The position numbers and the translations under genes were made by a program. DNA of 64,000 bases from Heteronotia binoei (Eukaryota): the NCBI RefSeq assembly GCF_032191835.1, contig NC_083233.1, forward strand, positions 34,658,001-34,722,000, written 5' to 3'. Positions 38,021 to 62,992 of this stretch are shown piece by piece. Under the pieces are notes generated by a model. That model saw only the letters and a program-made list of their open reading frames with translations. It ran no database searches and was not told where the DNA came from. Every line of letters begins with the position of its first letter. Positions within the stretch are counted from its first letter, which is position 1.

Positions 38021-39721
38021 GTAGTAGCCATCTGTAATACCTTAGCATAAATATAGCTGCTATGGATCTGTGATGCATTGGATGAAGTGAGCTCTGACTC
38101 ACAAATATTTATGGTGGTTTGAAGTCAATTAACTTGAAAGGAGGTAAAATAGTTACACCCTGTGGCGGAAAAATTCTAAGTTGGCCCTTTATGAAACACT
38201 CAGTTTACTATATGGAACACTCAAAACATTCACTGACTACAAGCCCCAGGATGCTTTGCAGGAAACAGCTCTCTTGAAAGTGGAAGTTAGGACACTATAG
38301 GTAGATTAAGGTAATTGAGATGGGAGGGCCAGGAATGAGCACCATTGGCATGAAAATTGTTTAGGTTTACCAGAGCTGGGAAATAAGGTTTATCAAGATT
38401 TTCTCTCTGGACATCATCAGAAGTCCAGATTGGCATCAAAAGGGTATGGAAATTATTCTACACTTAAGTGCTTCTGTTCTCTAGTTGTTGAGTGATATGT
38501 CAGAATAATGATTTTATAAGCAAGATGTTTATATTAAAAAAAGTCTTTGATGGTAAGGGGTTCACACATCCAGATAGTATATAAAGGTTGAATTTTTCAC
38601 TATTTCTTGCTGCCACGTCAGAGAACTGAACTGTTCTCTGGGGTGCCAGCCAATTCTCCTTTAGAGATCTCTGTTAGAAATTCTTTCAAGATAATCTAAA
38701 AGCTTTGGGGCACTTAGAATCTGCAATGCTTAAAGGACTTAGAATTTAGCAGGTATAATGTATAAGTATAGTTTATAAGAATAAGGTATAGCTTATAAAT
38801 TGTATAAACTGAGAACTGGAAATTGTTTTTCCCTCCACTGTATTTTGGGTACATAGAGAAATACAAGCTATCATATGTTTAAGGAATACCGTGAGCTGGG
38901 TCTGAGTCTCATGAATTTAGCTGCTGAGAACAAAAACGTGAGAATTGGTAAGTCTTGTGATTGGGTAAACCTCAAGAAGTGTCTATAAAATTAAAGGCAA
39001 TAAAGACATAATTTCCCCCACACACCCTTCAAAGTCCTTTGAAGGCAGTGGACTTCAAAGGATATAAAGTTGCTTAGGATGCCCTGTAATAGGGTTACCC
39101 TCTGTAATTATTTAAACTCATGAAGCCTAAACAAAATATTCTGCTTTCATTTGTGAACTTAATGGTGAAGACTATATCAGTAAATGAAAGTTGCAAATAA
39201 GGATTGCTAAGGTCTTGACTGATTGCTGTTGTTGTATCTCTTAGCAGCAGCAAGTTCATCTGTAAACATTAAAAGGCAAAGATGGTTATTTCTTTGAAAT
39301 AAAACACATATGGTTCCAGCAAATCAAAGAGTTGGATCCAACCAGCTTTTCCACCGGTGAAAAAGATTAGCCCCACAAAAGGCTAGATGGAGATTTTAGA
39401 ACCTGCATTGACAAACAGTATGAAGGACTAGGATGGCAGTAAGGAAAGGAATAGAAGGAAAAGGCTTGGATGGATCCAACAGAAACTGTTTAGAACTTTG
39501 GGGGTGGGGGGGAGGTTTCCACCCATCTCAACTCCCACTGATAAGTATGATTACAAATCCATGGGATTTACTTAGTTGGAATTGTGCACCTGTTGGATCT
39601 ATTGACATAAGCTGGCTTTATCAATAGCAAAACATTAAGCAGTTTCCAGTATGGATAGATACATGAGAACAGCATAAGTATAAATTATCTGGTACTTAAG
39701 TAATTACAGGAAAATATCTAC

Positions 39722-39774
39722 CTGTGTATGAACCTGTTGGTCTCTACTACAAAGAATACTTCAACAGGTAATGT
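39722..39774 (-). CDS. AKAP14: AKAP14 exon 4
   Basis: TLPVEVFFVVETNRFIHR; acceptor cctgttgcag, donor AG|gtagat. Confidence 0.88.
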
Positions 39775-40254
39775 CTGCAACAGGTATAAAAGTAGATGGT
39801 TAACACAATGAGGTCTTAAGGATTTCATTTTACTGAAAGAAGTCCCAGGTATCCAAGGTTTTCCAGTCCTCATGGAAACTGACAATCGATAATCACATTC
39901 AAGCAAGTGATGACCACATGCTCTCAGATAAGAGGACCTGGTACATAATACGCTCTGATATACAAAGAGGAGTTGTAGAGAATTCAAGCCATATTTGCAA
40001 TCAGCCCTTACCTCCCCTTCTTCAGTTTGTATCAAGTTTATCCCCCCAAATTCAGACCTTTTTGGGTTGCTACTATTACAGATGCAATGGTTAAAAGCCT
40101 TGGTTGCTTACAAATTTATAGAAGAAAATGGATGTTATCAGATCACTGCAAATAACGGTTTAAGGATCAAAACAGATCTTCACTAAGACACTCTAAGAAG
40201 GCTTGTACTGAGTATATTCAGAAAATAAGAGGCTGGAAGTATCAGAATTCTTAC

Positions 40255-40434
40255 ATCTGGTTTGATTTTGGAAACTTCTATGATGAAATAAACATTTGCA
40301 GTTGCTCGGGGGATGGGCTTCCTACGGGTTGGGATGCTCCAGCGTACCCGATAATGATATCTAGTACTGTACTGCAGTTCTTCATCTTCTAGATAGTTTG
40401 TCCAATGTAGCCAGCTCTCATGAAGCTCCCATGT
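40255..40434 (-). CDS. AKAP14: AKAP14 exon 3
   Basis: TWELHESWLHWTNYLEDEELQYSTRYHYRVRWSIPTRRKPIPRATANVYFIIEVSKIKPD (60 aa); acceptor attattctgcag, donor GAT|gtaag. Confidence 0.9.
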
Positions 40435-42997
40435 CTGCAGAATAATTTCAAGTCATTCTGAAGTTCTTTGTACATGTTCCTTACCTTCACAGTCTAATTC
40501 TTATTATACAATAGCACAGCTCCATTTGTAATACCAAGGGTACAATCCAGAGGAGATCAGGCATGCCGAAGGCTCATTGAAATCAGCAGGCCTTGCAGTG
40601 GAACTGTGATGCTTAGACAGTTCCTTGGGTGTCAGTCCCATTCTTTTCTTTTAGATGAGGTATGGCAGGGGCTACCATTGGGTCAAGGATATTACTCTGT
40701 GCATCTGGTGCAACAAAGCACACCTAGCTGCAGGCTGGAAAAGGGACAAGGGAGAAGAAGAGGAAAGTCTACATGGAATTTCCACACAGATATTCTTGAG
40801 ATCATTGACTGTGAGCTAAGATTTCATTGTCCCTGAAGTGCCAAACCAATGTCCGGGCTGTACCTATTCAGAATGCAAGTGGGAAGCTCATGTGATTTAA
40901 TGCTTCTCCATTAAAAAAATGAAATCCTGCATATAGGCATGTTAGTTCTCTATCCATTAGTAAGATATTGTAGTCAGTCAAGTGAATGCTAAGTCTGAAG
41001 TGGAACAGCCCGGACACCGATTTGCAATCCAAGTGAGAATCAGGCCGAAGTCTCACATTTTTGTTTATACACAGTTCAATAAGAAATCAGGCAGCTCTCA
41101 CTTTTTAGTATTCTGACCAAAGAGTTGCAGCCAAATGCATCGAGATGATAAATGTTTGGACCCTTAACCTACAGTAATCAAAAATGTTATGACAGGTTAA
41201 TTTGATATTACAAACAACCAAGGTTTTTTTTTTTTTGTAGAAAAAGCCCAGTGTCAAGCATGGTGAAATCCCATTGATAATTGATGGTGTAAGGGTCCTG
41301 CCTAACCTGGTCTGTGAAACATCATGGAGGATCCAACTTTCTTAGCTTGTTATTCTTTCCCTTTCCCCTTCTTGCTTTATGGCTATTAATTAGAAGTAGT
41401 GAGAACTGAAACCAAGTAATCAGCACCTTCCCATACATTCCAGTAAGGGAGTGAGAGACATCTGGAGAAAGCAAGGACACAGTCCTGATAACACTATGGG
41501 AATGTAGACATTTATGATAGTTTATGTGTGAATGCTACCCCCCAACCCCATCCCTTGGAATCCCTTTGAAGTAGGGTTTAAAATTATTGTATCAATGTGT
41601 ATTTGGCATTACTCTCAATAACCTGTTACCAAAGTATCGGTCTATCAATAACCTAGTCTTTGTATCAACTTCGACTCGTCACTGAACCCACATGCTTGAC
41701 ACCCAGCAGGAATTCATTTGTATATTAGGCCACACCTGCTGATGCCAAGCCAGATGGAACTGTGTTCCTATGTGTTCCTGCTCATAAAAAGCCCTGCGAA
41801 CAGCCATCTAATGCAGGTTGTGTTGCTGATCACCCAAAGACCACATGTTTCTCAAATAATAAACCATGTATTTATTGCTGATTTTTAACACAATGGGTTA
41901 TGTTATACTGTTCTGCAGAGCCTTCCAGTGTAAGAAGCCTTCCTCCAATGCAAGAGACTGAGCCTTCATTCCTTGGAGTAAGGTTCCTTGTGCAAGGAAA
42001 GGTGCCAGTGGCCCCATTCACCCACCCTGCTTTCCCCTTCACTGATTCTCTTTTTTAGTCTTGTGTTACAATTACCTTCATTGTTACAAGATAACATCAT
42101 TTTCGATCAGTTGTATACTGCTGTTCTACTCAGTTAACAATGACACCTTTGATTAGACTAAGGAGCCAAACATTTATCAACTGGAAGCTACCAGCCTCCA
42201 GATGGGGCTAGAGATCACCTGGAATTACAATTGATCTCCAATTGGACTTTTATTGTTTGCTGATCTATGACCATTATAAATAAATTCAATTCAATTGATC
42301 TCCAGACTACAGAGGTTGGTTCCCTTGAGAAAAACAGTTGCTCTGGAGGATGGACCCTATGGCATTTATATCCTGCTGAAGTCCCTCCCCTTCCCAGGAT
42401 CCACCCCCAAATCTCCAGGAATTTCCCAACCAGGAGATAACTCTAGGTCAATAAATTAGGGCTACCAGCCCCCAGGTGTGACCTGAGGATCCCTTGGAAT
42501 TACAGCTCATCTCCAGACTACGGAAGATACTTCTCTTAGGGAAAATGGCAGCTTTGGAGGGTGGACTCTGCAGCACTGTATCCCACTGAGGACCCTGGCC
42601 TACCCCGCCTGCATCTGCAAATCTCCAGGAGTTTCCCAACCTGGATCTCGCAACTGTATCCCCTCCCCATCCCCTGCCGGTAGCTGAGGGGGACCTGGCA
42701 ACCCTGGTCAAGGTTATGTTTCTGGGTTTTGTTTCTTGACTAAAATAAAAGTATTTAATCTTACTGTCATCAGCATAAAGCATCAGTAAATAAGTAACTT
42801 TTACGTAAGTAGAAATGTACCTTAATAAAGCCAATATAAATTCTTTGATAGCATTTCAGAAGTTAAATTTGTCTTTTGGAACTACTTGTAGGTACCTCGA
42901 CTAGCTACAGGCCTGCATCTAGCCAACTTCCAACCCTCGATTCACACATCCGGCAAGGCTGGGTCTGAAGGTAATGAAGTTCATAAATTCTCCTTAC

Positions 42998-43089
42998 TTT
43001 CAAGTATGCCTCAATCTGCAGCAGCCCTTTTGCTGTTGTGAAGTCCTTGCACATCAGCCACTTGATGTTTCTCACCTCGTATTTGGCTC
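42998..43089 (-). CDS. AKAP14: AKAP14 exon 2
   Basis: GAKYEVRNIKWLMCKDFTTAKGLLQIEAYLK resembles human [24 protein letters not shown]; donor AAA|gtaagg. Confidence 0.9.
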
Positions 43090-43175
43090 CTGCAACTGAA
43101 GAAGGCACAGCTTAGTGCCCAGCACAGATGGATTTCCCACCCTTTTGGAAATTTCAAAGATAGGACCAGTAATAC

Positions 43176-44660: not shown

Positions 44661-46513
44661 TTTTCCTGTTTAATAAAGCAGACTGGGTTTCAGCTCCTCC
44701 CCACAACATCTTAGATCATTTGTTATGCTCATACGCATATGCACAAAGGGGGACAAGTAATTGGAAGGCTCTGTCCTTTGTACTTGTTCAGAGACTGTCT
44801 TTACCAGGATTCCCCAAGGCACTGGTAGCATAGGAAGAGAAACATACTTTACATGCAAGCAAGCACATAATACATATATAAGAACACAGAGAGACCCAGG
44901 GTGGGACAGGCTAAACTGGAGATTATGGGCCCTGACTGGGTGAAAGAGATGGGGGATATAGTAAGGAGAGTAATTAGAGGAGATGAAGTAAAAAGGCTGG
45001 CTGGATATGACCTGTGTTATGCAAGTTAATCCCATCTACATACAGCTCTGCTTAGTTCTGCATTCTTTGCTGTTTCTGCTAGAGCAGGGGTGTCAAACAT
45101 GCAGCCCGCACAAGGCTCAAATCCGCCCCCCCCCAAGTCCCCCAGAGCTGGCAACCTTTACACTCCACCACAACTGCTCGTGATGAAAACGTACAGCCCC
45201 TGACACAAGAAGGTAGGTGTCATAGAAACAGGGCATTTATTCTGGGGAAAAGGGTGCCAGAACTCTCAAGTGGGAAACGAAGGAGAAATGCAGCGAGTGC
45301 CTCTCGTGAACTTTTAAACTTTTTTTTAGACTTTTGTTTCCATGAAGAGATTCTGGAATTCCATTCCACCATGTTCCCCCAGAAAAAAATAACAGCCCTT
45401 GGAAATAATGATCAAGCCTGCTTCACTAGGCATCCAATTGATCACAGCACTTCTTCCTCCCAAAAGCAGCTTGGGGATGTTTAATTACCTGTGTGATTCT
45501 ACCTTCCAAGTTCTTCTCTCTTGTGATGAGATGTGCTTTATTTCTCCCAGGGACGCTGCTCCCCAGGGCTCATTATGCAGTGGACTGGCAGGCGTCCCTA
45601 GTAAGTGTTTGGTCATAATCGTCACCCAGGCAACACCAGTTCAGCCAATAGAACGACAGCATTGATGTACAGGCATTCCATCCTGTTTAAAAGAAGTGTG
45701 CTGTTGAAGAACGGTTTGTTGTGCACATCAATGTTATCATTGGGCAGTGAGAGGCCAGAAGGAGATCACTGCCAAGTTTCTGTTTTCCATTTTGGAGTGG
45801 TGCAGGATCTTTACCCTCCATCCATTGCTAAATGTTGGCTGGGCAGTGTTGGAAACAAAATGTAATATGGACTTTGGCCTGTCTCATATGCAGGGCAGTC
45901 CTATATGAAAAAAAATGTAACAATTGGGGCCTGATTTCAATGTACTGCCTGATATGCCAAAGAACTCACTCATGCAACTTTGCAGTCACATAACACCTTA
46001 TTGGCTGCTATTCATGCAAAGTAGCTAATTACAATGCCAGCATAACTCCCACCTCCCAGAATTACAATGGATTTCCAGACTACAGAAATGAGCTCCCCTG
46101 AGAAAGTGGGGGGAGTGGAGGAAGGAGAGCTAGCTTTACCAAGCTCTCTCAATTGCACAGCAGAGCTACTGAACCAAGACTCTCTTCCTTCTGTTGACTG
46201 AGGCTCAACAAGCCAGTGAGGTGGATTAGGCTGAGTGTGTGCGTTTGTCTGTGTCCTTTATAAAGTTTATATTTCCCCTACCTAACATTACATTTTATGA
46301 CACACATGGCCTGGCCCAAGAAGGTAAACGGCCCTCATAACAAATTAGTTTGACACCCCTGCTTTATGTACCACTTCCCCACATCAAATTCCCTCCCTTC
46401 TCAGGAACCACCTCCAAATCTTCCAGATTTTTCCAGTCTGGAGTTGGCAACCCTAGCTGTACATCTCTGCATGAGTCGCTGCTCTGGGCTTATTTCTGCT
46501 AATTAGATTAGTT

Positions 46514-46717
46514 CAGGGCTTTTTTGGTAGAAAAAGCCCAGCAGGAATTAATTTGCATATCAGGCTATACCCCCTGACATCACCATTGTTCCACACAGGG
46601 CTTTTTTTTGTAGAAAAGGCACAGTAGTGATTCATTTGCATATTAGGCCACACCCCTGATGCCAAGCCAGCTGAAACTACATTCCTGTGCGTTCCTGCAA
46701 AAAAAAAAAAAGCCCTG
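46514..46717 (+). mobile_element. hAT-type MITE family B
   Basis: TIRs; TSD gattagtt/gatgagtg (2 mismatches). Confidence 0.8.
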
Positions 46718-48149: not shown

Positions 48150-48377
48150 GAGTATGTATAATAAAGAGCTGATGCAACCGTACTAGAATTTTGTGCGTTT
48201 GGATGCAAGAAGTCCTGACTCCTGAGTTCAAACTTCACTGCAATCATGAACTTACTTGCCTATCTTACAGAGTTGATACAAAAATATGTAATGTGAACTT
48301 TTCAGTAACAGCACCAAAGCATATAAGGCCCCTCCTGAAGGAGGTCCAATTGGCAGGCTTACCAAATTGCTTAACAC

Positions 48378-48562
48378 CAGGACTTTTTTGAGCAGGAACA
48401 CACAGATACACAGTTCTGGCTGGCTTGGTGTCAGGAGGTGTGGCCTAATATGCAAATCTTTCCAGATTGGCTTTTTCTTCATGCCCTGTATGAGACAATC
48501 AGGGGGTGTGGCCTGATATGTAAATTAATTCTTACTGGGCTTTTTCTCCAAAAAAGCCCTGT
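48378..48562 (-). mobile_element. hAT-type MITE family B
   Basis: TIRs; TSD cttaacac/tttaacac. Confidence 0.82.
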
Positions 48563-49225: not shown

Positions 49226-49433
49226 ATGGCTCACTGGAATTTCTCCCTTCTCTTTGGCTCCGCAGTCCTTTGGGCTATGCTGATTCCATGCCGTGCCTTC
49301 CCAACAGGAGCTCCTGCCTCAGCCTGTGAGAACATGTTACCTGTGCACACTGGGGTCCAGCCCCAACCAACTCGGGCTCCCTATGAATTTCTGTTGAGCT
49401 CACCGTCTTTCCTAAACGGGCAACCAATTAACA
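49226..49433 (+). CDS. Reeler-domain protein exon 1 (signal peptide and start of Reeler domain)
   Basis: gctATGg; MAHWNFSLLFGSAVLWAMLIPCRA-FPTGAPASACENMLPVHTGVQPQPTRAPY (FPxGAP..C..MxPxH is the Reeler N-terminal signature); donor A|gtaagt. Confidence 0.9.
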
Positions 49434-50898
49434 GTAAGTACCTCTTTCTAACTTTTGTTGAAATAATTCGCTTCAAAGCTATAATATTGAGGCGATCAAG
49501 TGAGATTACTTTTATCCTCCCTAATCTTTGGTTATGCTAGTAATTGAGGATATTTCCTTAATAGTCACAAAGGGTTGGGAAATGTTTTTGACCTGGCATT
49601 TGATAGCTGCTGGCTACTAGGGAGAGTTGCCAGCTCTGAGTTGTGAAATTGCTGGAGATTTGGGAGGTGGAGCCTGGGGTGTGCAGAGTTTGGGGAAGGA
49701 CAGACCTCAGTGGGCTGTAATTGCATAGTGTTCACATTCCAAGTAGCCTTTTCCTCCAGGGGAACTCACCCATTTTACCTGGAGACTGGTTGTAATTCCA
49801 AGAGATCTCCTGCCACCACCTGGAGACTGGCAACCCTACTATTAGTTTGGAACCTTGAAGGGGAGATGGCTGAAAAGGATCAGTAAAGTAAAAAAAAATG
49901 CAATCTTTAAAAAGAGAACAACCCCATGTAAGACTGAGGCTGGCTAGGACCCTTGGGGGAAAAGACAAAACGCCAGCATGGATAGGGTGAAGTAGACCTC
50001 CATTGAGAGGGAGTTCCAGAGTTGTGCAGGCTCTGAAAAGAAGACTCGGTCTTCTGCAATGCATGTCCACATAGAGCAGGTCCTCTAAGATGATATAACC
50101 TTTTTTCACTCAGATTCACCCAGTTTCCCTCCTTACTGTGCCTGTAATCTTCAAAACAGCCTTTTTTGTGGTCAAAGTGATCTTTTCAGCAGCAGGTAAT
50201 TATATCTAGCCCTGATTTCAGTGCCAAAGTCTATATAGAAGGAGGTGAAGTAAGGTAGTCTGAATTTGGCACTGGTGACCAAGCTGTCTTTCCGGAATTG
50301 GGTACTACAATTAATCCAGAGGATCATAGTTTCCTATGAAACTATGAAAGAGCACCCAGACCTGGTTTACACATGCAAGAGAATGAAATGGCAGGACATG
50401 AAATGGTGGAACAACATACTAAAAATGTTGGGCAGCTAAAATAGATTTTGCCATGTTGGCCTACAGGGAATGGGGATGGATTCTAGCTCTGAATGTCCCT
50501 TGAAAGAAAGAGAACTAGCGCTGCTAGATGCAAGGTCTTCTCTCGTGGTTGGCTGCACTGGTTCTACATTTACAGGGAGTCTTTAAACGTCATGGAACAT
50601 TATAAAATGTGATTATCTGTTATTTGAAATGGCATGATCCATTCCACCACCCTGAGTCTCCACTACCTCATTGCTCCTGTTATGTTTGACAAAACCGAGT
50701 ATTTGTTCCATGTGATTATTGGCTTGCAGCCGATCAGAGTTTCCTGTAGGTGGTAGGGTCTCTGACCATGTATTGCAGCTTTCCCATTTTCCCTTTTCCT
50801 GCTGCAGCCTGAAATGCCCCCTTTAAATGCTGGCAACCCCCACTCCCTTGTCCATGCAGATGTGTGTGACAGGATCCAACCCCCTGTTCTCTCTCCAG

Positions 50899-51011
50899 TT
50901 CAGATCCTTGGCCCTGCCTACAAAGGACTGTTATTAGAGGCTCGCTCCTTTGGCTCCAACGCTGCCCTGGGCATTTGGAAAACTCCACCTAACAACACAA
51001 AATTCTTGCAG
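50899..51011 (+). CDS. Reeler-domain protein exon 2
   Basis: IQILGPAYKGLLLEARSFGSNAALGIWKTPPNNTKFLQ (Reeler F/YxGxLLxAR motif); acceptor ctctctccag, donor CAG|gtaaga. Confidence 0.92.
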
Positions 51012-51418
51012 GTAAGAGACACAAATCCATTCCTCTTTTCTAGCCCAGAAGTCCTGGAAGTTGAGCAGAAAGCCTAAAGATTGAACTGTACAATTCTTAA
51101 ATAATGGATTCAGTTTGGTATTAAGTGGTTCTACCACCCACACTTTCCTTAAAAATTATAATTCTATAATCTGGCTCTTACATGACACCCCCCCCCCCCC
51201 AGTATCTTCCCAACTTCTGACTAGGTCACACCTGCTTCGTTTCAGTAAATTGGCTGTATCTAATGTTTTTTAGAGTATTTGCTGGTCCCAAGGAGGGAAA
51301 TTTCTTACCAGTACTGTCTTCTTTTAGCAGGCTTGAAGCAGAGGAGGAGGGAGAGTGTACTATTTCAACCATTTGCTTACTGGTGGTCTGCATTGGCTTA
51401 TTCCAAATTACATACACT

Positions 51419-51616
51419 CAGGGCTTTTTTGGTAGAAAAACCCAGCGAGAACTCATTTGCATATTAGGCCATACCCTCTGACATCACCATTGTTTTGCAT
51501 AAGGTTTTTTTGCAAAAAAAGCCTAGCAGGAACTCATGTGCATATTAGGCCATACCCCCTGACACCAAGCCAGCCAGAACTGCGTTCCTGTACATTCCTG
51601 CTCAAAAAAAGCCCTG
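51419..51616 (+). mobile_element. hAT-type MITE family B
   Basis: TIRs; TSD catacact/catgcacc (2 mismatches). Confidence 0.8.
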
Positions 51617-52552
51617 CATGCACCTTGCTGGGTTCCCTAATGCTGTGCAAATGCGACTGGACCCCCACAGCCATGGTCTAGCAAATTGGCTGATGATGGT
51701 AATGTGTTTAGACCAAAGGGCTGTACTAAAACTATTTTGCAAACCATTTGTAATTTTATTTAGTGGAAAATGTAATGCTATTATATTGCCATGATATTTG
51801 AAGGGACCAACTGGCAGAAGAGACCAAGAGCCCTGTAACTACTGTTCCCAAATCTTTGCAGAAACCATATAAATATTACTGGAGGCTGGGACCGTGGGTC
51901 TGGGATCATAAGAGCTGCTTAGAGATACAACCAAACAGCTTGAGTATGCTCAGTGGGATTTTTGATTAGCAGCCTCCCAGTTCCTGTTGTACAACATGTA
52001 TTTGGAAGCCCTTCCCAGGGGCAAAGCACTTGGCCATGGAACATGATGGGAGGCTGTTCAGTATGCACAAATTCTTGGGCACATAGAACAGGCTGTTCTA
52101 CAGATACTGACAGGGTCACTGAGAGCAGGAGAATGGGTAGACAAGATTGTGGGGAGCTTAATCACTCAGGGGGCCTGTGCAGCATAGGAAGTCATGTTTT
52201 GCTTGGGTCCAAGTGGTGGAGGAGATAAATCTTTAACTGGGGAGGACCCCGAGGTTCTCAGCAGCCTCTGGTTGCCAACCAATGCTATTATAAACTCATT
52301 ACTATACTTCAATGATGTGCCAGTCTTTTGAGGAACAGTCACAAGCTGACCTTTCTTTTAAACAACAAGAACTAGAAGTTGATGCTTCAGCTTTAAGAAA
52401 GCCGGAAGATCCATGGACAAAATGTGTAATGCTAGGGGTCTGCAATCAGACTCTCCCATGCATAATTTAGGAGCATAAAGCAGCTGTAGGGTGATAGAGG
52501 AATGGGGCCTGCAGGGGTTAGGCTGCAGCAACACCAGGGAAAGGGGTTGAAC

Positions 52553-52772
52553 TAGAGTTGCCAATCTCCAGGTAGTGGATTGAGATCTCCCACTATTACA
52601 ACTGATCTCCAGGTGAGAGAGCTCAGATCACCTGGAGACAATGGCTGCTTTGGGAGATGGACTCTATGGCATTATACCCCATTGAAATCCCTCCTCTCCC
52701 CAAACCCCACTCTCTTCAGGCTGCATCCCCAAAATCTCCAGATTATTTCCTAAAACAGCCCTGGCAACTCTA
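52553..52772 (-). mobile_element. hAT-type MITE family C
   Basis: TIR tagagttgcca/tggcaactcta; TSD ggttgaac/ggtttaac. Further family C copies near 42300-42705, 46040-46456, 49618-49838. Confidence 0.8.
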
Positions 52773-53102
52773 GGTTTAACTCTGCCATTCACCATGTTGT
52801 TTCCCCAGTGGAAAATACCTTCTCCGAGTTGCTTTGATTCCCAATAGAGAGAAAAAGGCAAATAAACATATTGGGCCTGTCTTATTTCTGTCATAACACC
52901 AGAGAAGGGGCATTTTCAGTCAAGAATACCCCCTTTCCCCAGCACTGAATCCATGTCAATCTCCTCCATGGCTTTTTGTGACATATCTGGGATATCGGGT
53001 CACATAATGACACTGTCATGTGCAGAATAGCCTTTAGGATGAGAAAAAGTTGTACAGCCACAGTTGTACAGATTATGTAAATAGCTTTCTCCCCTTTTGC
53101 AG

Positions 53103-53218
53103 TGCTCTGGAAATCCACATGGAGCTGTGACTCACTCCAACACTAATTTAAAAACAAGGCAGACTACGTATACATGGCTCCCGCCTAACTCTGGCTGCCC
53201 CCCAGTGGTTATGTTCAT
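53103..53218 (+). CDS. Reeler-domain protein exon 3
   Basis: CSGNPHGAVTHSNTNLKTRQTTYTWLPPNSGCPPVVMF (Reeler vTH...K....W.xP motif); acceptor ccccttttgcag, donor AT|gtaagt. Confidence 0.92.
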
Positions 53219-53574
53219 GTAAGTTTCATGAATTCTTTTTAAAAATGATGCCTTCCTTTAAATGTATTTTAGTTCCATTCCTTGTAGAAACAGAAAGTTC
53301 TTTAAATGGGCATAAGGGCTGCCAAGAAACCAACACAAGCTTCTTTCTTACTGTTCACGGTAATTTTATTCTTCCAGGATGCAAAGGATGTTTTTTTAAA
53401 AAAAAAAGTAGAAAAAATTTTCAGAGACTGAATCCTCCCCCATGCACATAAGAAGTGCCCTGCTGGATCAGACCAGTGGTGCCTCTCATCCAGCATTGTT
53501 TGACAAAGAGGCCACAGACAGGACATAGAACCCAAGGCCTTCCCTGGTGCTGCCTCTTAGCACAAATATAAAGA

Positions 53575-53776
53575 AGAGAATAATAATAAGAAACTGGATT
53601 TATACCCCACCCTTCACTACCTGAAGGAGTCTCAGAGCAGCTTACAATATCCTTTCCCTTCCCCTCCCCTTTCCCCACAACAGACACCCTTTGAAATAGG
53701 TGGAGCTGAGAGAGCTCTGACAGAAACTGCTGTTGAGAGGAAAAGCTCTGTGAGAACTTGCGACTGACTCAAGGTC
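53575..53776 (-). mobile_element. 5'-truncated Squam3-like SINE
   Basis: Shares body and tail with the copy at 20910-21226. Confidence 0.7.
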
Positions 53777-54146
53777 TACTGCCTCTGAATGCAGAGGTTC
53801 CCTTTAGTCATCATGGCTGGAATGTTGATGGATCTCTGCTGCATGAATCTCTCTCATCCCTTTTTAAAGCTGCCTATGCTTGTGATCACCATTATGCAGT
53901 GCATTTCACAATTACTTGTCAAGTGACAGAGTACTTCCTTTTTTCTATCCTGAATATATTGTCCCATCAACTTAATTGGGTGTACCTGAGTTCTTAAGTA
54001 AAAGGGAGTTTTCTCCATCCATTTTTCTGCACCCCATGTATAATTATGTAAATTTCTATCATGGCAGATTGCAAAGGTCTATTTTTAAATGTATATTAGA
54101 AATCTTGTCTCTCTGCCTCCCCCCCCCCCTTTATTTTTTAAATCAG

Positions 54147-54211
54147 AGCAACGGTTGCCCAATCTCGTGAAATCTACTGGACCAATGTCAAGTCTAAAGT
54201 GATCTGGAAAA
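54147..54211 (+). CDS. Reeler-domain protein exon 4
   Basis: ATVAQSREIYWTNVKSKVIWK (Reeler C-terminal ATV...W strand); donor A|gtgagt. Confidence 0.9.
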
Positions 54212-54833
54212 GTGAGTAATTCTCTAAAGTGCTATTTTGAAATAAGGCCCTGCTTTCAAGGTAACTAACGGCTTCCACTAAAATAGCATATTATGCATGG
54301 AAAGAATACATTGTATTTGGGAGAGCAAGACAGCACTGCATTTATCATTACAGATCTGATCCCTCTACTTGGAATCAAAAGAATGGTTTCCTGTTTATCT
54401 AGCAACTAACTCTTGGCATTTCTGATACAGTGCATGGCTTTCCAATGGTACAAAAAGTATGCACAAAGTAAATAAATTAACAAAATGTCATTCCTGAGCT
54501 GTTTGGAGAAAGAACAGGATAAAAATGAGATAAAGTCCAAGAAAATTGTTACAGCTCATTAAATTGTTACAGATCACTAATTTGGCCCTCCGAGTACAAA
54601 GGAGATATATATTTGACAATGGTTAGGAAGGATATCACCTGGCTACATTGTCTCTGTCCATCTGGTTAGTCTTGGAAATAAGAGTGTAGTGGACTGAATG
54701 ACCCTTGGTCTAATCCAGAAAGACAATTCTTAATGTCCTTGAGTAAACTAAAAACTGAACCTCTGGTTTTATATTGTTTCAACTTTAGCCCAGAGTAGAA
54801 AAATCTTAATCTAATTTTCTTTCTATACTACAG

Positions 54834-54931
54834 ATCCCAAAGCTACTTGTGGAGCCCAGATGCTAACCAGAACATGGCCTGCTGCAGCACTGTTATCATC
54901 TATGCTACTCATTTTGCTTGTATACCTTTAG
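54834..54931 (+). CDS. Reeler-domain protein exon 5 (GPI-signal-like hydrophobic tail)
   Basis: Acceptor ttttctttctatactacag; NPKATCGAQMLTRTWPAAALLSSMLLILLVYL-TAG; five exons total 600 nt (199 aa). Confidence 0.82.
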
Positions 54932-55373
54932 AGACCCTTACAAAAATGACTACTTGGTAGTTGTGAATGAATGGAAACAGAATAATAATTTTTGTCCAAA
55001 TATTGAAGAAAATCCTCTTTTCAGCTCTTCCCTAAGAAAAGAATGGTGTTCCAACAAGCCTCTTCAAATAGAATTTATGTTTCTTATAATATAGGGCAAC
55101 TAGCCCCTAGAATTCTAGCCCCTAGAATGGGAGAAGTGAAAATAGGACATTTCGTATTTAATGAAAATATGATTCCATTGCTAGGATAAACACTATAGAT
55201 TTTCAGTGTACAAATAAACCCTATCACATTGTTTCCACATCATCTGGTTTGGCGTAGAACTTTTCAGATTTATTGTGGGCAGTGAAACTACTGGATAAAT
55301 GTCACTTAGTGTAGCTTAATTACCCAGATCTGGCAATGTTATCTCGAGTAAATGAACCATTAATAATCAGGAC

Positions 55374-56339: not shown

Positions 56340-58878
56340 GATCATGTGTCTCCCACTCTCCCATGTTTAATGGTTCATTAAATTTAATCAATTGGAATGA
56401 AATTGATACTAAATTAATTATATGTATTTGCTAATTTGAAATTAATTGGATTTTGTTCGTACTGATTGACTTATTAATTGGCTGCTGGGAGGGTTTTAGT
56501 AATTGATTTAATGGGTTAGTATTTATTCATTCTGTTTAACTGTTGAGAATTTTTAGACACTAAATTAATGATTGAACTGCTGATTAATTAGATTTAATTT
56601 ATTAATTTATTACAGTACTAAATTAAGAGGGAGAAATTAGCATTGGGTAGGGTGTTATATTAATTTAGTGGGTAGACATAAATTGGGAATCCAATCAGAC
56701 TTAGTGGGAAATAGGAAAAACGAAACTAGTGCAATATTATATTACCAAATTGGAGTATACCAGGTATTGAACGATTGGTTTAATAGTGTGGTTACTAAGT
56801 GCTCCATCTTGATTCGTCTGAAGCTCCTACGAAGGCCACTAATGTGAGATGACTGAGCTGGGGATCCCGGTGTTCCTGGGGAGGGGAAAGTATAGTGGTG
56901 GGAACAGGCATTTATGTAAGGGAAGGAGGCCAAGATCCATGAATGCTCGACCTCCTTCCAGCCTGCATCCCATCCCAACAGTTGCAAGCAGTGGGTCCAA
57001 GTTAAAGCATCCGCCTCTGTCATTGGTGCTGTGCCTATTAATAATAAGACCTCTGTCCTGTGAGAATACCTGCAGGAGCAGAATATAGACCTGGCTTGTG
57101 TGACTGAGACCTGGGTGCGAGAGGGGGAGACAGTTGCTCTCTCCCAAGTAGCTCCTCCTGGGTTCTCAGTCCTCCACCAATCACGGACCAGCGGATGTGG
57201 GGGGGAGTTGCGCTGTTCATTCGGAAGGATTACTCCTTCTGGGCACTTCCGGCCCCAAAGATCACCGGTGTTGAATGTGCCGGCATGTTGGTTGAGGCGC
57301 AAGAGAGTTTGGCTATTTGGCTGGTGTACCGACCGCCCTCTGCACCAGCCAATGCCCTGCCAATCCTTGTGGAGGCTATAGCAGGCTGGGTGTTGCAGCA
57401 CCCTAGACTTCTGGTCCTGGGAGACTTCAATGTCCATGCCGATTATGTGGGCTCCACATTGGTGTTGGACCTGGTGTCATCCATGGCAGTGCTAGGACTC
57501 TCAAAATATGTAACAACTCCCACCCATCAAGCTGGTCACATCCTGGATTTGATCTTTGCGGCAGGAATGACAGTGGACCGAATTACTGCAGATGCAGTGC
57601 CGTAGTCAGACCACTACTCCCTGAAGGCTCATCTGAATGCCCCGCTCCAACCCTGCTTGGGCGGTAAGCATTATTTTTGCTCGCCCACAGAGCCAAATGG
57701 ATCCTATGCAGTTTCAGATGGCTCTTTGGGATCCTTGGTCCCCTGGCGATTCCCTAGATGAGCTAGTGGAGACCTGGCAAAACAGGCTCACCACAGCCAT
57801 CAATGAAATCACTCCCAGGCTCCCTCTGTGCCCCCATACAAAGTTGGTGCCCTGGTATACACGGGGGCTACGGCAAATGAAACGGAGGCTCAGACAACTA
57901 GAGGCAGTGGCGACAAGCCCGCGACGAAGTGACAAGCAGCTTATAGGATATTTATGAGAACCTATAAGATGGCGGTCAAGGCCGCTAAGAAAGTATACTT
58001 TACAGCCATGATCGCGTCTGCGAACTCGCGCCCAGCACAATTATTTAGAACAGTTCGGTCTCTAACTACCCTACTGATGGGTATACCAAATGCTAGGGAA
58101 TTCGATAACAGTGAGGCCTTTTCGAGCTTCTTCGCAAATAAAGTCCTGTCACTCTGCTATGACCTCCCAGTCACTTTAGAAACAGTAACAGAACTCGAGG
58201 CTCCGAGCACATCTTCTAGTCCAGTTTTGGATTTTTTCACTCCACTCAGCCTGGAGGAAGTTGACAGAATACTCTCTACTGTACACCCAACTACCTGTAG
58301 GCTGGACCCGTGCCCCTCTTGGCTAATAAAAACTGGCTGTGAGGGGCTACGAGCTCCCCTAAGGGAAATTGTCAACCAGTCCCTTCTTGAGGGAATCTTT
58401 CCCCGGCCTCTTAAGGAGGCAAACTGGCAAACTACCAGCCGGTGTCCAACTTGTCGTTTTTAGGCAAGATTATTAAAAGGGCTGTGGCAGTGCAGCTTCA
58501 GAGTTTTCTGGATGACGCTTCTGTGCTAAACCCACATCAATCCGGTTTTCGTCCAGGTCATGGGGCAGAGACAGTACTGGTCGCCTTCACAGATGACCTC
58601 CAGAGACACCTGGATAGAGGTGGCTCGGCGGTGCTGATGTTATTAGACCTGTCAGCAGTGTTCAACACAGTTGATCATCAGTTACTTACCTGTCGCCTCA
58701 CCGGCGCTGGAATCCAGGGGTTAGCCTTGCAGTGGCTTTCCTCCTTTCTCCAGGGTTGAGGACAGAGGGTGGCACTAGGGGAAGAACTATCCCGGCAACA
58801 CCCACTTATTTGTGGCCTTGGCGGGGAAGGCAGGATATAAATTAAATAAATAAAAATAATAAAATAAAATAAATAAAA
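56340..58878 (+). mobile_element. L2-clade LINE, 5' part retained, frameshifted and internally deleted
   Basis: APE endonuclease motifs (DLACVTETW, YRPP, LGDFNVH, PTHQAGHILDL), RT N-terminal motifs (QSGFRPGHG.ET, LLDLSAVFNTVDH), then an abrupt jump to an A-rich (AAAT)n tail at 58840-58878. 5' boundary approximate. Confidence 0.85.
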
Positions 58879-59009: not shown

Positions 59010-59030
59010 TTAGTCAATATTCTCCAAGCC
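59010..59030 (-). CDS. NDUFA1: NDUFA1 exon 3
   Basis: Acceptor tatttttcag; GLENID-TAA; AATAAA at 58968-58963. Confidence 0.92.
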   Translation of the reverse strand, partial: GLENID

Positions 59031-59726
59031 CTGAAAAATATAAAATTAAACAATGTTAAAGGCTTCTGCCAGATATAACATTGATGCCACCCAAGAGTTA
59101 ACAAATCCCTTTCCAAGGTACTTTTCTGCTTATTTTTGCTGACAATATAAAGGTGGTGATCATGTGCAGTGCAAGCAGTGTTGCACTGCATGATGGGTGA
59201 TTTTCCTGCCTAGCTGCCCCCTCCCAATGCAGTCTTCTGTTCCCCACACATGCCCCCCTAGGTTGGTTGGCCGATTCCCAGGGACAGCATGAGGGTTTAT
59301 ATATGAGGCTGCCATGAGAGGAGAGGAATCAGTAAAAATCACCTCCCTTTCTGCGTGGAAGTATCTGCCTCCAGAACTTCTTAGATGCAGCATCAGGCAG
59401 GCAAGCTCTCAGCACTGTTATTTGATCTCCAGCACTCAGCATTGTTATCAGTGATTTTATTTTCTGTCTGAAGGCCATATCCTACTCTGGTTTCTCCTTG
59501 AGATGTGTGGCTGTTAACAGATGTCAAGGGGCGCAGCCTAGCCCAGAAGTCACTCAGGGACCAAGGCAGAGGCTAACTGCTGATGAATGTATTTTTATCT
59601 GATGTACATCACCCAGAGCCTGGCCGTGGCTAGGATGGGGCAATTAATTAAACTGAAATAACAACAACCTTTCAGTACTAGTTTTGCCCTAACCACTTTG
59701 TACCAAGACATCTGTTCAGAACTCAC

Positions 59727-59816
59727 CTTTGATTCATAGTAGCGATCAGTTTCGGAAACACGCCTGTCCCTCTCCATTAGGTACCACTGATAGGCATTCC
59801 GAGCAATCCTCTTCTC
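59727..59816 (-). CDS. NDUFA1: NDUFA1 exon 2
   Basis: EKRIARNAYQWYLMERDRRVSETDRYYESK; acceptor ctgtgcccttag, donor AAG|gtgagt. Confidence 0.95.
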
Positions 59817-61088
59817 CTAAGGGCACAGAAACACATCAGAGAGTATAAAGGAAAGGAAAAAAAAGAAAGATGGCATGTAACTGGAAAAAAATATAGATGC
59901 AAAGCAAACCTGACATCAGAAAGAGGAATTAAGTACAAGTGATGCTGGTTAAAGTGCAAAGATTTTTCTGCAACCACACAACATTACAATCTAACATGTG
60001 GCACAATTAAATTTGTAGGTAGGGATACAGTTCAGCAGAGATGATTAAAAATGTTTCTGTCCCATTTCAGACTGCTAGTGTGGGTTTTTGTCACTAAATG
60101 TTTCCCCATTTTAACATACAGAAAACTAGCCATGATGTGTAATTGAAAGAGCACTACAAATAGTCTGTTGGTCCTGGTCCAAATGTTGTTAATTCTGAAA
60201 TGGCTTTTACTGTTGTGATTTCACTTACCGGTACATTTTTACCACATATACCTGTTATGGAGCTGGATATAGTGTGGATGGGCCTCTATGTCCCTGAATT
60301 ACCAATTATTTGACTAGTCCAACAACATCCACTTAATCTAGCGCAGTTCAGTAGAGACCTAAACACAGATCTATGCCGTTTATTTATTCAATTCCTATTG
60401 CACTTTTCCTCAAAGGAGCTCATGATGGTATACATCAGTTGCCTCTCCCTTGGTTTCAGCATCACAACAACCCTGTGAGGTAATTTAGGTTTAGAAATTG
60501 AGTGATTAACTTTTTTGCCGCCTAGTAAATTTCATAAAGGATCTGAACCCAGCCTTATTGTCACTTTAATCAATCCTCAATGCAGGCTACTGTCAGTCAC
60601 TTTATACATGGTATAGAAAGGCTACAAAAATCTTGAGATAAAAAGAAATTTATAACGTGAGACAAGATGGTGGATGGTTAGTGTCAAGCTACTGGGAGAT
60701 TAAGGTTACCAAAAACCCCTACTCCATCTTTTTGAAGCTTGCTTGCTTTATCCTAAGTTCCCAAAAGTACGGTATTTCTTTGCTTTGGAGTCAGTTCATG
60801 TTTAGGCCGACAAAGGGTCTAAACCCACAGCAGTGCCACCCCCCAAATACAAGCCAACCAAGCACACCCCAATAACAAGGACGCTCAATCTGTTATCGCA
60901 GCCATGCAGTTCTTGTGAGATGGAAGTGGAATCACACTGCAAACATGAGCTGTCCAGCAGCTATGCTTTGACTTCGTTCTCCCTGACAGGAAGCCATGCC
61001 AAGGATCATTCCCAATACACTGTCTTTGGGTTTCTTCCGGTATACCTGGATGCCATGAGAGCAAAGCGAGAGCCCCACGTACACAGGG

Positions 61089-61816
61089 TGTGACTAGGAT
61101 GCTTTTATTGTATAGACAATGTTATCTTGGGACTGATCCAATCAGTCATCAAAAACCAGACTTCACACAAAGACTCTGCCATACAATCTGAGTGGATCAT
61201 TCGGACTTGTGAACAACACAGAGACTCTCACTTTTGTGTAGTTCTGGGTGTCACTTTAGATAACAATTCGGCCCTAAAGATAGTATTATTTAGGTGAGCT
61301 AAATCCATCAACGCCATTAAACCTTTCCAAACCTTCCCTTTATGGTGTCATATACCACATGTACTAGTGTCAGAGACCACCTAACCCTGGTGTCACAGGT
61401 CATCTGACCTCCCCAGCCTGAGGGCACATGGTCATCTTTAAAAGGTCTGACCCATGGCTCCACAGGTGTGCGTCTTACAGTACCCCTACCTTGCTGTATA
61501 GGCCACCCCCAAAACCTGATCAGTTTTGGGTCCCCATAGTAAGATACGCGAGTCATGTCTTGCTCCCCCTTTTTGCCAGTATTGGATGTTTTATCTGAAG
61601 ACTGACAGGTAAAGGATCACCTTGTTTGTGTTATACCCTTATGTTGCCCCTATACCCTTTTTCATTTCTATTATTTCCTAGGCACTGTGTGGTTGATGAA
61701 TGGATTATTATTCTTGTATGACTATATTTTCCTAATAAAATATTCCTTTAGTTTACCCAAAGAATATTGCTTCTTTATTAATAGAGAAATTCTTGGGAGA
61801 CTGACTTCTGTATACA
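61089..61816 (+). mobile_element. Possible solo LTR in NDUFA1 intron 1
   Basis: About 730 bp, TG...CA ends, AATAAA near 61735, imperfect flanking caggg/caggt; boundaries uncertain. Confidence 0.3.
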
Positions 61817-61887
61817 CAGGTTTTGATCCTGCTTCAGGTGGTCATCTTTGCCCACCAAACTAATTCCCTAACTTCTTTTGAGGGCAA

Positions 61888-62702
61888 TATGGTTAACAGC
61901 CAGATCCCCCCTGGCCACTGGCAGGGTATTGGGGGAATGCACAGTTGCTAGATCCAGGTTGGGAAACTCTTGGAGATTTGGGGAGGGAGCCTAAGGAGGA
62001 CAGGGGCCTCAATGTGGTACAATACCCTAGAGCAGAGGTGGCCAAACTTGCTTAACATAAGAACCGCATAGAATAAAGGTCAGATGTTTGAGAGCAGGCA
62101 GGAAGGAAGGAATATGGGGAGAGAGTGGTGGAAAGAAAGCAACTTTAAATGCATTCTCTAAGCTGCCAGGTGGCTTGGCGAAGTGATTTAAAGAGACAAA
62201 TGCCTTCACCAAGCTGCACGGAGGGGGGGGGGTGCTTTGAGAGTCACACAATATGTGCAAAAGTGCCACATGTGGCTCCCGAGCCACAGTTTGGCCACCC
62301 CTGCCCTAGAGTGCACCCTCCAAAGCATCCATTGTCTCAAGAGGAACTCTCCGTAGTCTTCAGATCAGCTATAATTCTGGGGGGTCCCCAGGTTCCATGA
62401 GGAGGCTAGCATCTCTATGGGAGATCCAGGTTCAAATCCTCACTTCATCAAAAATCTCAGTGGGTAAGCCAGGGCCTATCACACTCTCTCTCAAACCTGT
62501 GTGTTGGGAAATACCTGAAAATTTGGGGGTGGAGTCTGGAAAGGGCTGGTTTGGGGAGGGGAAGGACCTCAGCAGAGTAAGAGGGCACGGAATTTGCCCT
62601 TCAGAACAGCCGTTTTCTCCAGGCGAATTGATCTCTGTCGTCTGGAGATCAGCTGTCATTCCGGGAGATGTCCAGGCCACACCTGGAAGGTTACTAACTC
62701 TA
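61888..62702 (+). mobile_element. Degraded family C MITE hosting a nested element
   Basis: Family C internal motifs (gggaaactcttggagatttgggg...ctccaaagcatcc) on both sides of the insertion; TIRs decayed. Confidence 0.55.
62033..62303 (+). mobile_element. Nested hAT-type MITE (TIR CAGGGGTGGCCAAAC)
   Basis: Perfect 8-bp TSD CCCTAGAG at 62025-62032 and 62304-62311. Confidence 0.87.
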
Positions 62703-62890
62703 CTCAAAACCCGCACAGGATTGTTGAGGCGATAATGTGGGGTAAAGGAGAACAAGGAGCGCCGCCCTGAGTTCACTGGAGAAGGGAGGGGATAAAAGTG
62801 TGCAACAGAGAAAAAGCAAGACCCAGCTAGAGAGTAAAACGGGAGCTCTCTCGCCGCCAGATCTCACCACGGCCGACTAGCCAGACATAC

Positions 62891-62992
62891 CTTTCCTCCG
62901 TTCGTGTATCTCTGGATCCAGTAGGTGCTGATCCCAGGGATAGTCAAGCACACATACATGATAGTCAAGGAAGGCAGGATCTCATACCACAT
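62891..62992 (-). CDS. NDUFA1: NDUFA1 exon 1 (MWFE subunit of complex I)
   Basis: [34 protein letters not shown], donor AAG|gtatgt; three exons give 70 aa. Confidence 0.95.

Follow-up and report, generated by a model that had tools for sequence, protein, structure and literature searches.

The 64,000-nucleotide window of the Heteronotia binoei genome analysed here contains, between AKAP14 and NDUFA1, a Reeler gene whose five plus-strand exons join into a 600-nt frame of 199 codons (208 + 113 + 116 + 65 + 98 nt), with a single stop codon that forms its end. All introns run from GT to AG with a pyrimidine tract before the AG, and the ATG in exon 1 has the context G(-3)/G(+4). The gene stands head-to-head with AKAP14 and tail-to-tail with NDUFA1. 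Features of the locus, with positions given within the window, are as follows:

39721..43099, minus strand: AKAP14 exons, the upstream neighbour, identified by tblastx against lizard, alligator and frog loci at their AKAP14 ends
40252-40443, minus strand: AKAP14 exon with a Pfam AKAP28 match (E 1.9e-27)
49226..49433, plus strand: exon 1, 208 nt, ending in phase 1, with the donor GTAAGT at 49434
50899..51011, plus strand: exon 2, 113 nt, Reeler strands with the GLLLEAR motif
53103..53218, plus strand: exon 3, 116 nt, with Cys108, the AVTHSN motif, WLPP and Cys139
54147..54211, plus strand: exon 4, 65 nt, last Reeler strands (ATVAQ...YW)
54834..54931, plus strand: exon 5, 98 nt including TAG, with the stalk, Cys173-Gly-Ala, a 6-residue spacer and an 18-residue hydrophobic tail
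54929-54931, plus strand: stop codon TAG, directly after the tail
55213..55218, plus strand: candidate polyadenylation signal AATAAA, the first after the stop and 282 nt downstream, by motif only
59013..62992, minus strand: NDUFA1, the downstream neighbour, with coding exons at about 62891-62992, 59727-59816 and probably 59013-59045

A first-pass annotation of this DNA had described a stand-alone gene of five frame-consistent exons (600 nt, 199 aa) at this position. That structure was recovered on the plus strand with all five exons in place, the one correction being that exon 1 ends at 49433 and not at 49434. The location between AKAP14 and NDUFA1 was upheld by the AKAP28 match and by a Pfam MWFE match (E 3.7e-11) that places NDUFA1 exon 1 within 62864-63052 on the minus strand; the NDUFA1 exons were placed with seven squamate NDUFA1 proteins, six of them from geckos, as tblastn queries, and conserved AKAP14 5' sequence reaches about 45.7 kb. 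Open reading frames 3' of the Reeler gene belong to a LINE fragment (Exo_endo_phos, RVT_1) and then to NDUFA1 on the opposite strand. The gene also stands alone as described: further FRRS1-like exons were not found downstream, where the next gene is NDUFA1 on the minus strand, and orthologues stop at 193-200 aa.

Exon by exon, the frame aligned to annotated orthologues, and tblastn of 13 family members mapped residues 1-69, 70-107, 108-146, 147-168 and 168-end to the five exons. Exon 1, which encodes the start of the Reeler domain with its GAPxSACxxMxPxH motif, matched Podarcis muralis XP_028571655.1 in HMMER (71% identity over residues 1-69, E 6e-24) and Euleptes in tblastn (E 5e-35). For exon 2, identity to orthologues was 66-89% in squamates, turtle, alligator and frog and 57% in two teleosts; exon 3 was 86-98% identical to four gecko orthologues, exon 4 aligned with the closing part of the orthologues' Reeler domain, and exon 5 shared 81% identity with the Gekko japonicus C-terminus. 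These tblastn matches, with the same exon boundaries, are far beyond chance, and the five-exon gene of this gecko is real and intact. The frame could in principle be a decaying relic (pseudogene) or a chance assembly of exons, but the 199-codon frame is intact with canonical splice-site pairs throughout, exon-wise E-values go down to 1e-35, and the comparison with Gekko japonicus over 196 codons gave a dN/dS of 0.20 at dS 0.24, that with Eublepharis a dN/dS of 0.22, with dS of 0.24-0.41 for the two geckos. A relic or chance frame is already contradicted by these observations, and we give it a probability close to nil. Given dN/dS values of about 0.2 against two geckos, the gene is under purifying selection.

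Orthologues were found in four other geckos, lizards, snakes, turtles, alligator, tuatara, frogs, ray-finned fishes and sharks. In RefSeq they span 193-200 aa with the same exon boundaries and are named "putative defense protein 3 / Hdd11", other names for the vertebrate group being "putative defense protein 1 / 2"; the zebrafish orthologue is si:dkey-251i10.2 (NP_001313480). The exon-1 HMMER and family searches returned only Reeler proteins of about 135-230 aa (most of them 190-200), four geckos included. The gene is thus already known, having been automatically annotated in RefSeq for dozens of vertebrates, among them the geckos Eublepharis macularius, Euleptes europaea, Sphaerodactylus townsendi and Gekko japonicus (in the last as "ferric-chelate reductase 1-like"). 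Compared with these gecko models, the Heteronotia gene has the same length, exons, layout and locus, with exon-wise identities of 62-98% (68-81% for exon 5 where aligned); it is closest to Gekko japonicus (dS 0.24) and identical to none. Its exon structure, length and position are those of the "putative defense protein 3" group, from which it does not differ in kind: it is the orthologue in another gecko species.

The gene tree tracks the species tree, with support of 97/95 for the vertebrate clade, 96/96 for tetrapods and 96/96 for geckos, and all invertebrate Reeler proteins fall outside the vertebrate clade. Gene order was likewise conserved: Podarcis, Alligator and Ascaphus share AKAP14 (minus), Reeler (plus) and NDUFA1 (minus), and the Reeler (plus) and NDUFA1 (minus) pair also occurs in Gekko, Eublepharis and the shark Heterodontus, while the Reeler orthologue of the teleost Cottoperca has other neighbors. 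The conserved position between AKAP14 and NDUFA1 argues for a locus separate from REELD1, a tentative distinction drawn from position.

Exons 1, 2 and 3 matched the Pfam Reeler family (PF02014) collinearly, at profile positions 1-34 (13.9 bits), 46-79 (15.4 bits) and 83-116 (21.4 bits, with a cut-off of 21), and the 21 residues of exon 4 alone had no Pfam match. Orthologues matched the complete profile (1-131) at 78-104 bits, and it is from these proxies plus the exon-wise matches that the completeness and fold of the gecko domain, and its full-length membership in PF02014, are taken. The Podarcis orthologue served as the structural proxy, and its AlphaFold model had a mean pLDDT of 79.7, with 10-residue block means of 84-96 over residues 51-170. 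In a Foldseek search of the PDB with this model, the top eight matches were F-spondin reeler chains (E 1e-7 to 1e-5), the best being the human structures 2ZOT, 2ZOU and 3COO (E 1e-7, target TM 0.67-0.69), and an F-spondin-like beta-sandwich is therefore assigned on the Podarcis proxy; a PDB sequence search with exons 1 and 3 gave no match. Identity to the F-spondin reeler domain is about 20%, and F-spondin is a large matrix protein with this domain at its N-terminus, in contrast to the stand-alone, putatively anchored domain described here. FRRS1 / SDR2 likewise begin with a Reeler domain belonging to this Pfam family, but FRRS1 continues into DOMON and cytochrome b561 parts, whereas the gecko gene stops after the Reeler domain and a stalk and tail of 40 residues. 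A ferric-chelate reductase of the FRRS1 type was ruled out by the TAG at 54929-54931 and by the Reeler-only orthologues.

By sequence rules, residues 1-24 resemble a signal peptide, with a hydrophobic core at residues 6-21 and small residues at -3 and -1 (Cys and Ala of Cys-Arg-Ala) before Phe25, and the Podarcis proxy model shows an N-terminal helix. These rules are compatible with the signal peptide of the first-pass annotation, and the collinear Pfam matches agree with its single Reeler domain. Cysteines lie at positions 22, 34, 108, 139 and 173; because Cys22 falls inside the putative signal peptide, the mature form has four (34, 108, 139 and 173), the number originally reported. The only N-glycosylation sequon outside the signal peptide is Asn101 (NNT) in exon 2.

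The C-terminal end of the protein is WPAAALLSSMLLILLVYL. Its last 15 residues carry no charge and have a mean Kyte-Doolittle hydropathy of 2.53, and the sole small-x-small site, Cys-Gly-Ala, lies 27 residues from the C-terminal end, so that Cys173-Gly-Ala is followed by the spacer QMLTRT and an 18-residue hydrophobic tail. This is the arrangement of a GPI-type C-terminal signal, namely a triplet, a polar spacer of 5-10 residues and a hydrophobic end of 15-20 residues without cytoplasmic residues. A small site followed by an uncharged terminal tail nearly always marks GPI attachment. The same crude sequence rule found this type of tail in 57 of 65 full-length relatives, which bears out the GPI-like tail after a small-residue site that had been proposed for the gecko protein, and tail properties were conserved across relatives though the tail sequence was not. 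The hydrophobic segment could instead be a retained transmembrane helix with essentially no cytoplasmic tail, which would make this an ordinary membrane-spanning protein. Consistent with such a helix, the Podarcis proxy model is continuously helical over residues 180-198, and some squamates have Val, rather than a small residue, at +2 if Cys173 is the attachment site. However, the tail ends the protein without charged stop-transfer residues, here and in most relatives, the small-x-small site lies 18-34 residues from the end in 57 of the 65, and Gly/Ala/Ser-rich linkers precede the tail in ray-fin orthologues. We therefore regard a membrane-spanning protein as unlikely and a GPI anchor, attached at Cys173 or Gly174, as probable.

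Both Cys139 and Cys173 were present in 18 of 19 tetrapods and in 2/2 sharks and chimaeras, and both were absent from 30 of 33 ray-fins. This paired gain and loss suggests a disulfide that may pin the GPI attachment site to the domain. The 199-residue precursor would begin with a cleavable signal peptide, followed by a single Reeler domain with a beta-sandwich fold, a short stalk tied back to that domain by the probable Cys139-Cys173 disulfide, and the GPI-attachment signal. Given this layout of a Reeler domain and a GPI signal, the mature protein would have about 150 residues and carry one N-glycan; it would be displayed on the outer leaflet of the plasma membrane, and phospholipase could shed it from there. 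We consider it very likely that the gene, with this predicted precursor layout and GPI signal, is the gecko orthologue, intact and maintained by selection, of a gnathostome gene present in single copy.

The gene had been proposed as kept in reptiles and lost in mammals. No relative was found in the 10 kb beyond NDUFA1 in either a marsupial or a rodent, in line with the mammalian half of this proposal, but the gene is gnathostome-wide, from shark to alligator, and two birds in which the NDUFA1-AKAP14 interval was fully covered had no trace of it. Given that two birds and the sampled therian flanks are without the gene, the original formulation is too narrow. The gene is lost from birds and from the sampled therian flank, and it appears to be missing in therians. 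The gene is old and fixed beside NDUFA1 from shark to alligator, yet birds keep no trace of it in the same interval.

For function, the nearest guides are the single-Reeler proteins of arthropods, namely tick PIXR, crayfish PcReeler, shrimp LvReelers and lepidopteran Noduler/Hdd11, which pair a signal peptide with a single Reeler domain of comparable size and share with the vertebrate family the motifs GAPxxACxxMxPxH, THS and ATV. They act against bacteria at epithelial or haemolymph surfaces (PMC5543126, PMC10149183, PMC12113285). Tick PIXR inhibits Gram-positive biofilms (PMC5543126); crayfish PcReeler likewise inhibits biofilm, and it binds both bacteria and microbial polysaccharides (PMC10149183). 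The arthropod proteins are described as secreted and fall outside the vertebrate clade (97/95) at about 30-45% identity; with insect Hdd11/Noduler only the domain layout is common, the vertebrate name having been transferred by similarity. With every invertebrate Reeler protein of the tree placed outside the vertebrate clade, function transfer from arthropods is weak.

Transcripts of homologues are present in salmon fin, with an approximately 25-fold drop with sea lice (PMC7177938), and in cichlid fin, where egg-spots were lower than the rest of the fin (logFC -2.2; PMC5012078). In goldfish, "putative defense protein 3", matched by name, had FPKM values of 0 (white skin), 23 (yellow skin) and 9.5 (brown skin) (PMC9854719). 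These sources are bulk-tissue lists, and they point in different directions, up in yellow goldfish skin and down in cichlid egg-spots. From the arthropod proteins and the fish skin and fin transcripts we infer a possible immune or epithelial role, and our best guess is an integumentary surface protein that binds microbes or glycans. More specifically, the protein may bind microbial or host polysaccharides at an integumentary or mucosal surface and limit bacterial adhesion or biofilm, which we put forward as tentative and on balance doubtful.

The goldfish values, in a list that places the gene beside perilipin-like, DGAT2 and slc2a11-like genes (PMC9854719), would also fit a role other than defence, in pigment cells that are not melanocytes or in some further trait of scaly or moist skin that birds and therians lack. 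The distribution, in fishes, frogs and non-avian reptiles and not in two birds and two therians, agrees with this, and on such a reading lineages with feathers or fur would have lost the gene once that cell type was gone. However, the cichlid egg-spot in which the homologue is lower is rich in xanthophores (PMC5012078), and we judge a pigment or skin-trait function improbable. Less probable still is that the stand-alone domain handles metal like the FRRS1 N-terminal module and presents substrate to a separate membrane reductase. Such a role could be read from the "ferric-chelate reductase 1-like" names given by pipelines to the Gekko japonicus and Notechis orthologues, from the Met-x-Pro-x-His and Thr-His-Ser motifs conserved family-wide, and from the invertebrate FRRS1 homologues retrieved by the exon-1 search. 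Yet the names reflect similarity transfer only, DOMON and cytochrome b561 parts are absent from the gene and its orthologues, and the tree places the N-terminal domains of invertebrate FRRS1 apart from the vertebrate clade. We know of no metal-binding role of a Reeler domain.

Returning to barrier defence, the fullest version of that proposal is a single-copy, GPI-tethered Reeler protein, kept beside NDUFA1 since the jawed-vertebrate ancestor, that would bind microbial polysaccharides and block bacteria from settling on ectotherm skin, gills or mucosa, and that was dropped independently in birds and therians. As a whole this is speculative and rather unlikely. If true, it would represent an unrecognised arm of vertebrate barrier immunity, with PIXR and PcReeler as its arthropod counterpart.

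The 199-codon Reeler gene on the plus strand is a real gene. Its five exons, as read from the sequence, add up to 600 nt of coding sequence (208+113+116+65+98), and all four introns start with GT and end with a pyrimidine tract and AG. The anatomy of the five-exon model proposed in the first-pass annotation was right and needed a single correction: exon 1 ends at 49433, given that the donor GTAAGT starts at 49434.

Exons of the Reeler gene in the window, read from sequence
49226-49433, plus strand, exon 1, 208 nt
50899-51011, plus strand, exon 2, 113 nt
53103-53218, plus strand, exon 3, 116 nt
54147-54211, plus strand, exon 4, 65 nt
54834-54931, plus strand, exon 5, 98 nt

Exon 1 encodes a hydrophobic N-terminus, Cys-Arg-Ala preceding Phe25, and the motif FPTGAPASACENMLPVH, followed by GLLLEAR and an NNT sequon in exon 2, CSGNPHGAVTHSN, WLPP and one Cys in exon 3, and ATVAQ...YW in exon 4. 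In exon 5, KATCGA is followed by six spacer residues, then by the tail WPAAALLSSMLLILLVYL and a stop codon. All searches with this gene were made one exon at a time, and the exons were joined solely for counts of length, frame, stop, Cys, sequons and hydropathy. Given that the joined protein was thus left out of searches, claims about the whole protein (domain completeness, fold, and position in the tree) were made via annotated orthologues as proxies. Counted per exon with split codons excluded, dN/dS was 0.20 against Gekko japonicus (196 codons, dS 0.24, dN 0.049), 0.22 against Eublepharis, and approximately 0.1-0.2 against lizard and alligator, where dS was saturating. In geckos, purifying selection acts on the gene, and a pseudogene reading was rejected.

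The gene lies between AKAP14 and NDUFA1, and an AATAAA is found at 55213, downstream of its TAG stop codon. A regular expression for an AKAP14 motif had no match in the window; Pfam and a tblastx comparison with orthologous loci did place AKAP14 there.

Neighbors of the Reeler gene in the window
about 39.7-43.1 kb, sequence conservation reaching 45.7 kb, minus strand, AKAP14, from tblastx to orthologous loci and Pfam
57100-58800, plus strand, LINE fragment (Exo_endo_phos, RVT_1) whose ORFs are split over several frames, located between the Reeler gene and NDUFA1
near 62891-62992, 59727-59816 and probably 59013-59045, minus strand, NDUFA1 exons, downstream neighbor

The first-pass annotation had considered an extra downstream exon that would make this a longer, FRRS1-like protein. 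Beyond the TAG, we found the LINE fragment and then minus-strand NDUFA1, and orthologues end at 193-200 aa with a Reeler domain only; on these observations, a longer FRRS1-like gene was rejected. Elsewhere in the window, short ORFs whose translations are almost the same (such as IRPHLLxPSQxELC) are repeated at 41718-41888, 46513-46665, 48252-48482 and 51457-51681, in introns and intergenic DNA and on both strands, and look like a SINE-type repeat family of the Heteronotia binoei genome.

A HMMER search with exon 1 against 1.84 billion representatives yielded 106 matches, including sharks and one chimaera, and the top match was the 199-aa Podarcis muralis protein XP_028571655.1, annotated as "putative defense protein 3" and 71% identical. 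A family search with XP_028571655.1 retrieved 70 matches, all Reeler-only and most of them 190-200 aa long. These comprised geckos (Euleptes, Eublepharis, Sphaerodactylus and a partial Gekko japonicus model), other lizards, snakes, turtles, alligator and tuatara, as well as frogs, many teleosts (si:dkey-251i10.2 in zebrafish) and paddlefish. The same exon boundaries were reproduced when 13 family members were compared to the window by tblastn; the window was closest to Gekko japonicus and identical to none of the members, and is therefore from another gekkotan. The Gekko japonicus RefSeq model (163 aa, "ferric-chelate reductase 1-like") is missing its N-terminus, and an intact exon 1 matching that of the window is present immediately 5' of where the annotated gene begins (KQ757546.1, positions 9893-10099 of the fetched locus L008). 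The family is already automatically annotated in many genomes, and in the literature on vertebrate members we found gene-list entries only and no dedicated paper.

The maximum-likelihood tree of 37 sequences, in which four annotated geckos stood in for the window protein, had the topology of the species tree, with support for vertebrates (97/95), tetrapods (96/96), squamates (100/99), geckos (96/96) and ray-finned fishes (94/98). Cartilaginous fishes formed two groups, and invertebrate sequences fell outside the vertebrate clade. P0069 and P0098, proteins from Callorhinchus and Pristiophorus, form their own clade within vertebrates (97/93) and represent a second stand-alone Reeler paralogue of cartilaginous fishes, which is 191 aa long and differs in its Cys pattern close to the tail.

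The Pfam scan of the five exon pieces gave collinear Reeler (PF02014) matches to profile positions 1-34, 46-79 and 83-116, at 13.9, 15.4 and 21.4 bits, and orthologues matched the full profile (1-131) at 78-104 bits. The AlphaFold model of the Podarcis orthologue, used as a proxy and built from alignment A1, had a mean pLDDT of 79.7, with 10-residue block means of 84-96 over residues 51-170, and consisted of a beta sandwich with N- and C-terminal helices. Its best eight PDB matches were human F-spondin reeler chains (2ZOT, 2ZOU, 3COO; E 1e-7 to 1e-5, target TM 0.62-0.69). Searching PDB sequences with exons 1 and 3 returned no match at E up to 10 because the exon pieces were too short and too distant, while the fold search with the proxy model succeeded.

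Given the minus-strand placement of AKAP14, the gene order in the window is AKAP14(-)/Reeler(+)/NDUFA1(-). The annotations of Podarcis, Alligator and the frog Ascaphus show this order as well, with UPF3B coming next, and Reeler(+)/NDUFA1(-) is found in Gekko japonicus, Eublepharis and the horn shark Heterodontus. From the adjacency common to the window, reptiles, frog and horn shark, we therefore infer that the Reeler gene and NDUFA1 have been adjacent since the jawed-vertebrate ancestor; in the teleost Cottoperca, the neighbors of the Reeler gene differ. The head-to-head partner of NDUFA1 was UPF3B in lizard, gecko, alligator, frog and both birds studied, and RNF113A in the marsupial and rodent.

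No bird or mammal protein was present in the 70 family matches or among the named exon-1 matches, and none of the unnamed ones looked like one; likewise, none of the 106 exon-1 or 70 family matches was named as, or resembled, a monotreme orthologue. Bird and mammal NDUFA1 loci were obtained through a full-length NDUFA1 search; a word search with the NDUFA1 exon-1 ORF gave only four named squamate proteins and two fragments. In the blue tit, 1.7 kb separate NDUFA1 and AKAP14, no gene is called in this gap, and eight Reeler proteins had no tblastn match below E 0.4 in the interval. The 4.4-kb interval of the curlew Numenius arquata, from NDUFA1 to uncalled AKAP14-like DNA (L005:15071-17400 of the fetched curlew locus, beside L011:12428-15042 in the blue tit; tblastx E 9e-104 to blue-tit AKAP14), was equally empty of Reeler matches. 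NDUFA1 and AKAP14 are on one strand and only 1.7-4.4 kb apart in both birds, with the Reeler gene gone, and the idea that birds lack AKAP14 too, suggested by the curlew locus, is wrong given that the blue tit has AKAP14 and the curlew AKAP14-like DNA. In the marsupial Gracilinanus and the rodent Arvicanthis, a 10-kb stretch past NDUFA1 that stops short of AKAP14 had no called gene and no match below E 0.1, while positive controls at four reptile, frog and fish loci gave strong matches. The first-pass view of a gene kept in reptiles and lost in mammals agrees with its absence beside NDUFA1 in the marsupial and rodent flanks but was too narrow, as sharks, fishes and frogs keep the gene and birds are without it. 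This loss may be better described as one in therians and in birds.

The C-terminal tail was judged by the textbook rule of a small-x-small site, a polar spacer and an uncharged hydrophobic end, a crude rule applied with no background rate from unrelated secreted proteins. Exon 5 has a single small-x-small site, Cys173-Gly-Ala, 27 residues before the end; six polar residues follow as a spacer, and the last 18 residues are hydrophobic and uncharged. The rule was satisfied by 57 of 65 full-length relatives, and the tail sequence itself was poorly conserved; it is usual for GPI signals to keep their properties while the sequence drifts. Judged by these features, the protein is quite probably GPI-anchored. 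Cys139 (exon 3) and Cys173 (exon 5) were both present in 18/19 tetrapods and in the two syntenic sequences from shark and chimaera; 30/33 ray-finned fishes and one snake had neither. This pattern suggests a Cys139-Cys173 disulfide that would tie the stalk, and with it the candidate site of GPI attachment, to the domain, and this predicted bond would place the attachment site at or after Cys173. There is precedent in Thy-1, whose GPI is attached to a disulfide-bonded Cys.

Data on fish homologues come from skin, fins and larvae. In salmon fin, the homologue was ~25-fold lower where sea lice were attached (PMC7177938), and the zebrafish homologue was included in a larval proteome (PMC7271515). 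A pigment-cell or skin-type role is kept as a rival reading: the goldfish homologue was higher in yellow and brown than in white skin (PMC9854719), which suggested xanthophore-specific expression, but the cichlid anal fin homologue was lower in egg-spots (PMC5012078), opposite to that expectation, and xanthophore specificity was rejected. A metal-handling role is kept as another rival. Arthropod Reeler proteins, described also in shrimp (PMC12113285), offer an analogy. Tick PIXR, a secreted gut protein, restricts biofilms of Gram-positive bacteria and influences the gut microbiota (PMC5543126), and crayfish PcReeler, expressed in gill, binds bacteria as well as microbial polysaccharides and suppresses biofilm (PMC10149183). 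By analogy with these proteins, our best guess, a tentative one, is that the vertebrate protein might be tethered to the surface of barrier epithelia and bind microbial or matrix polysaccharides there.
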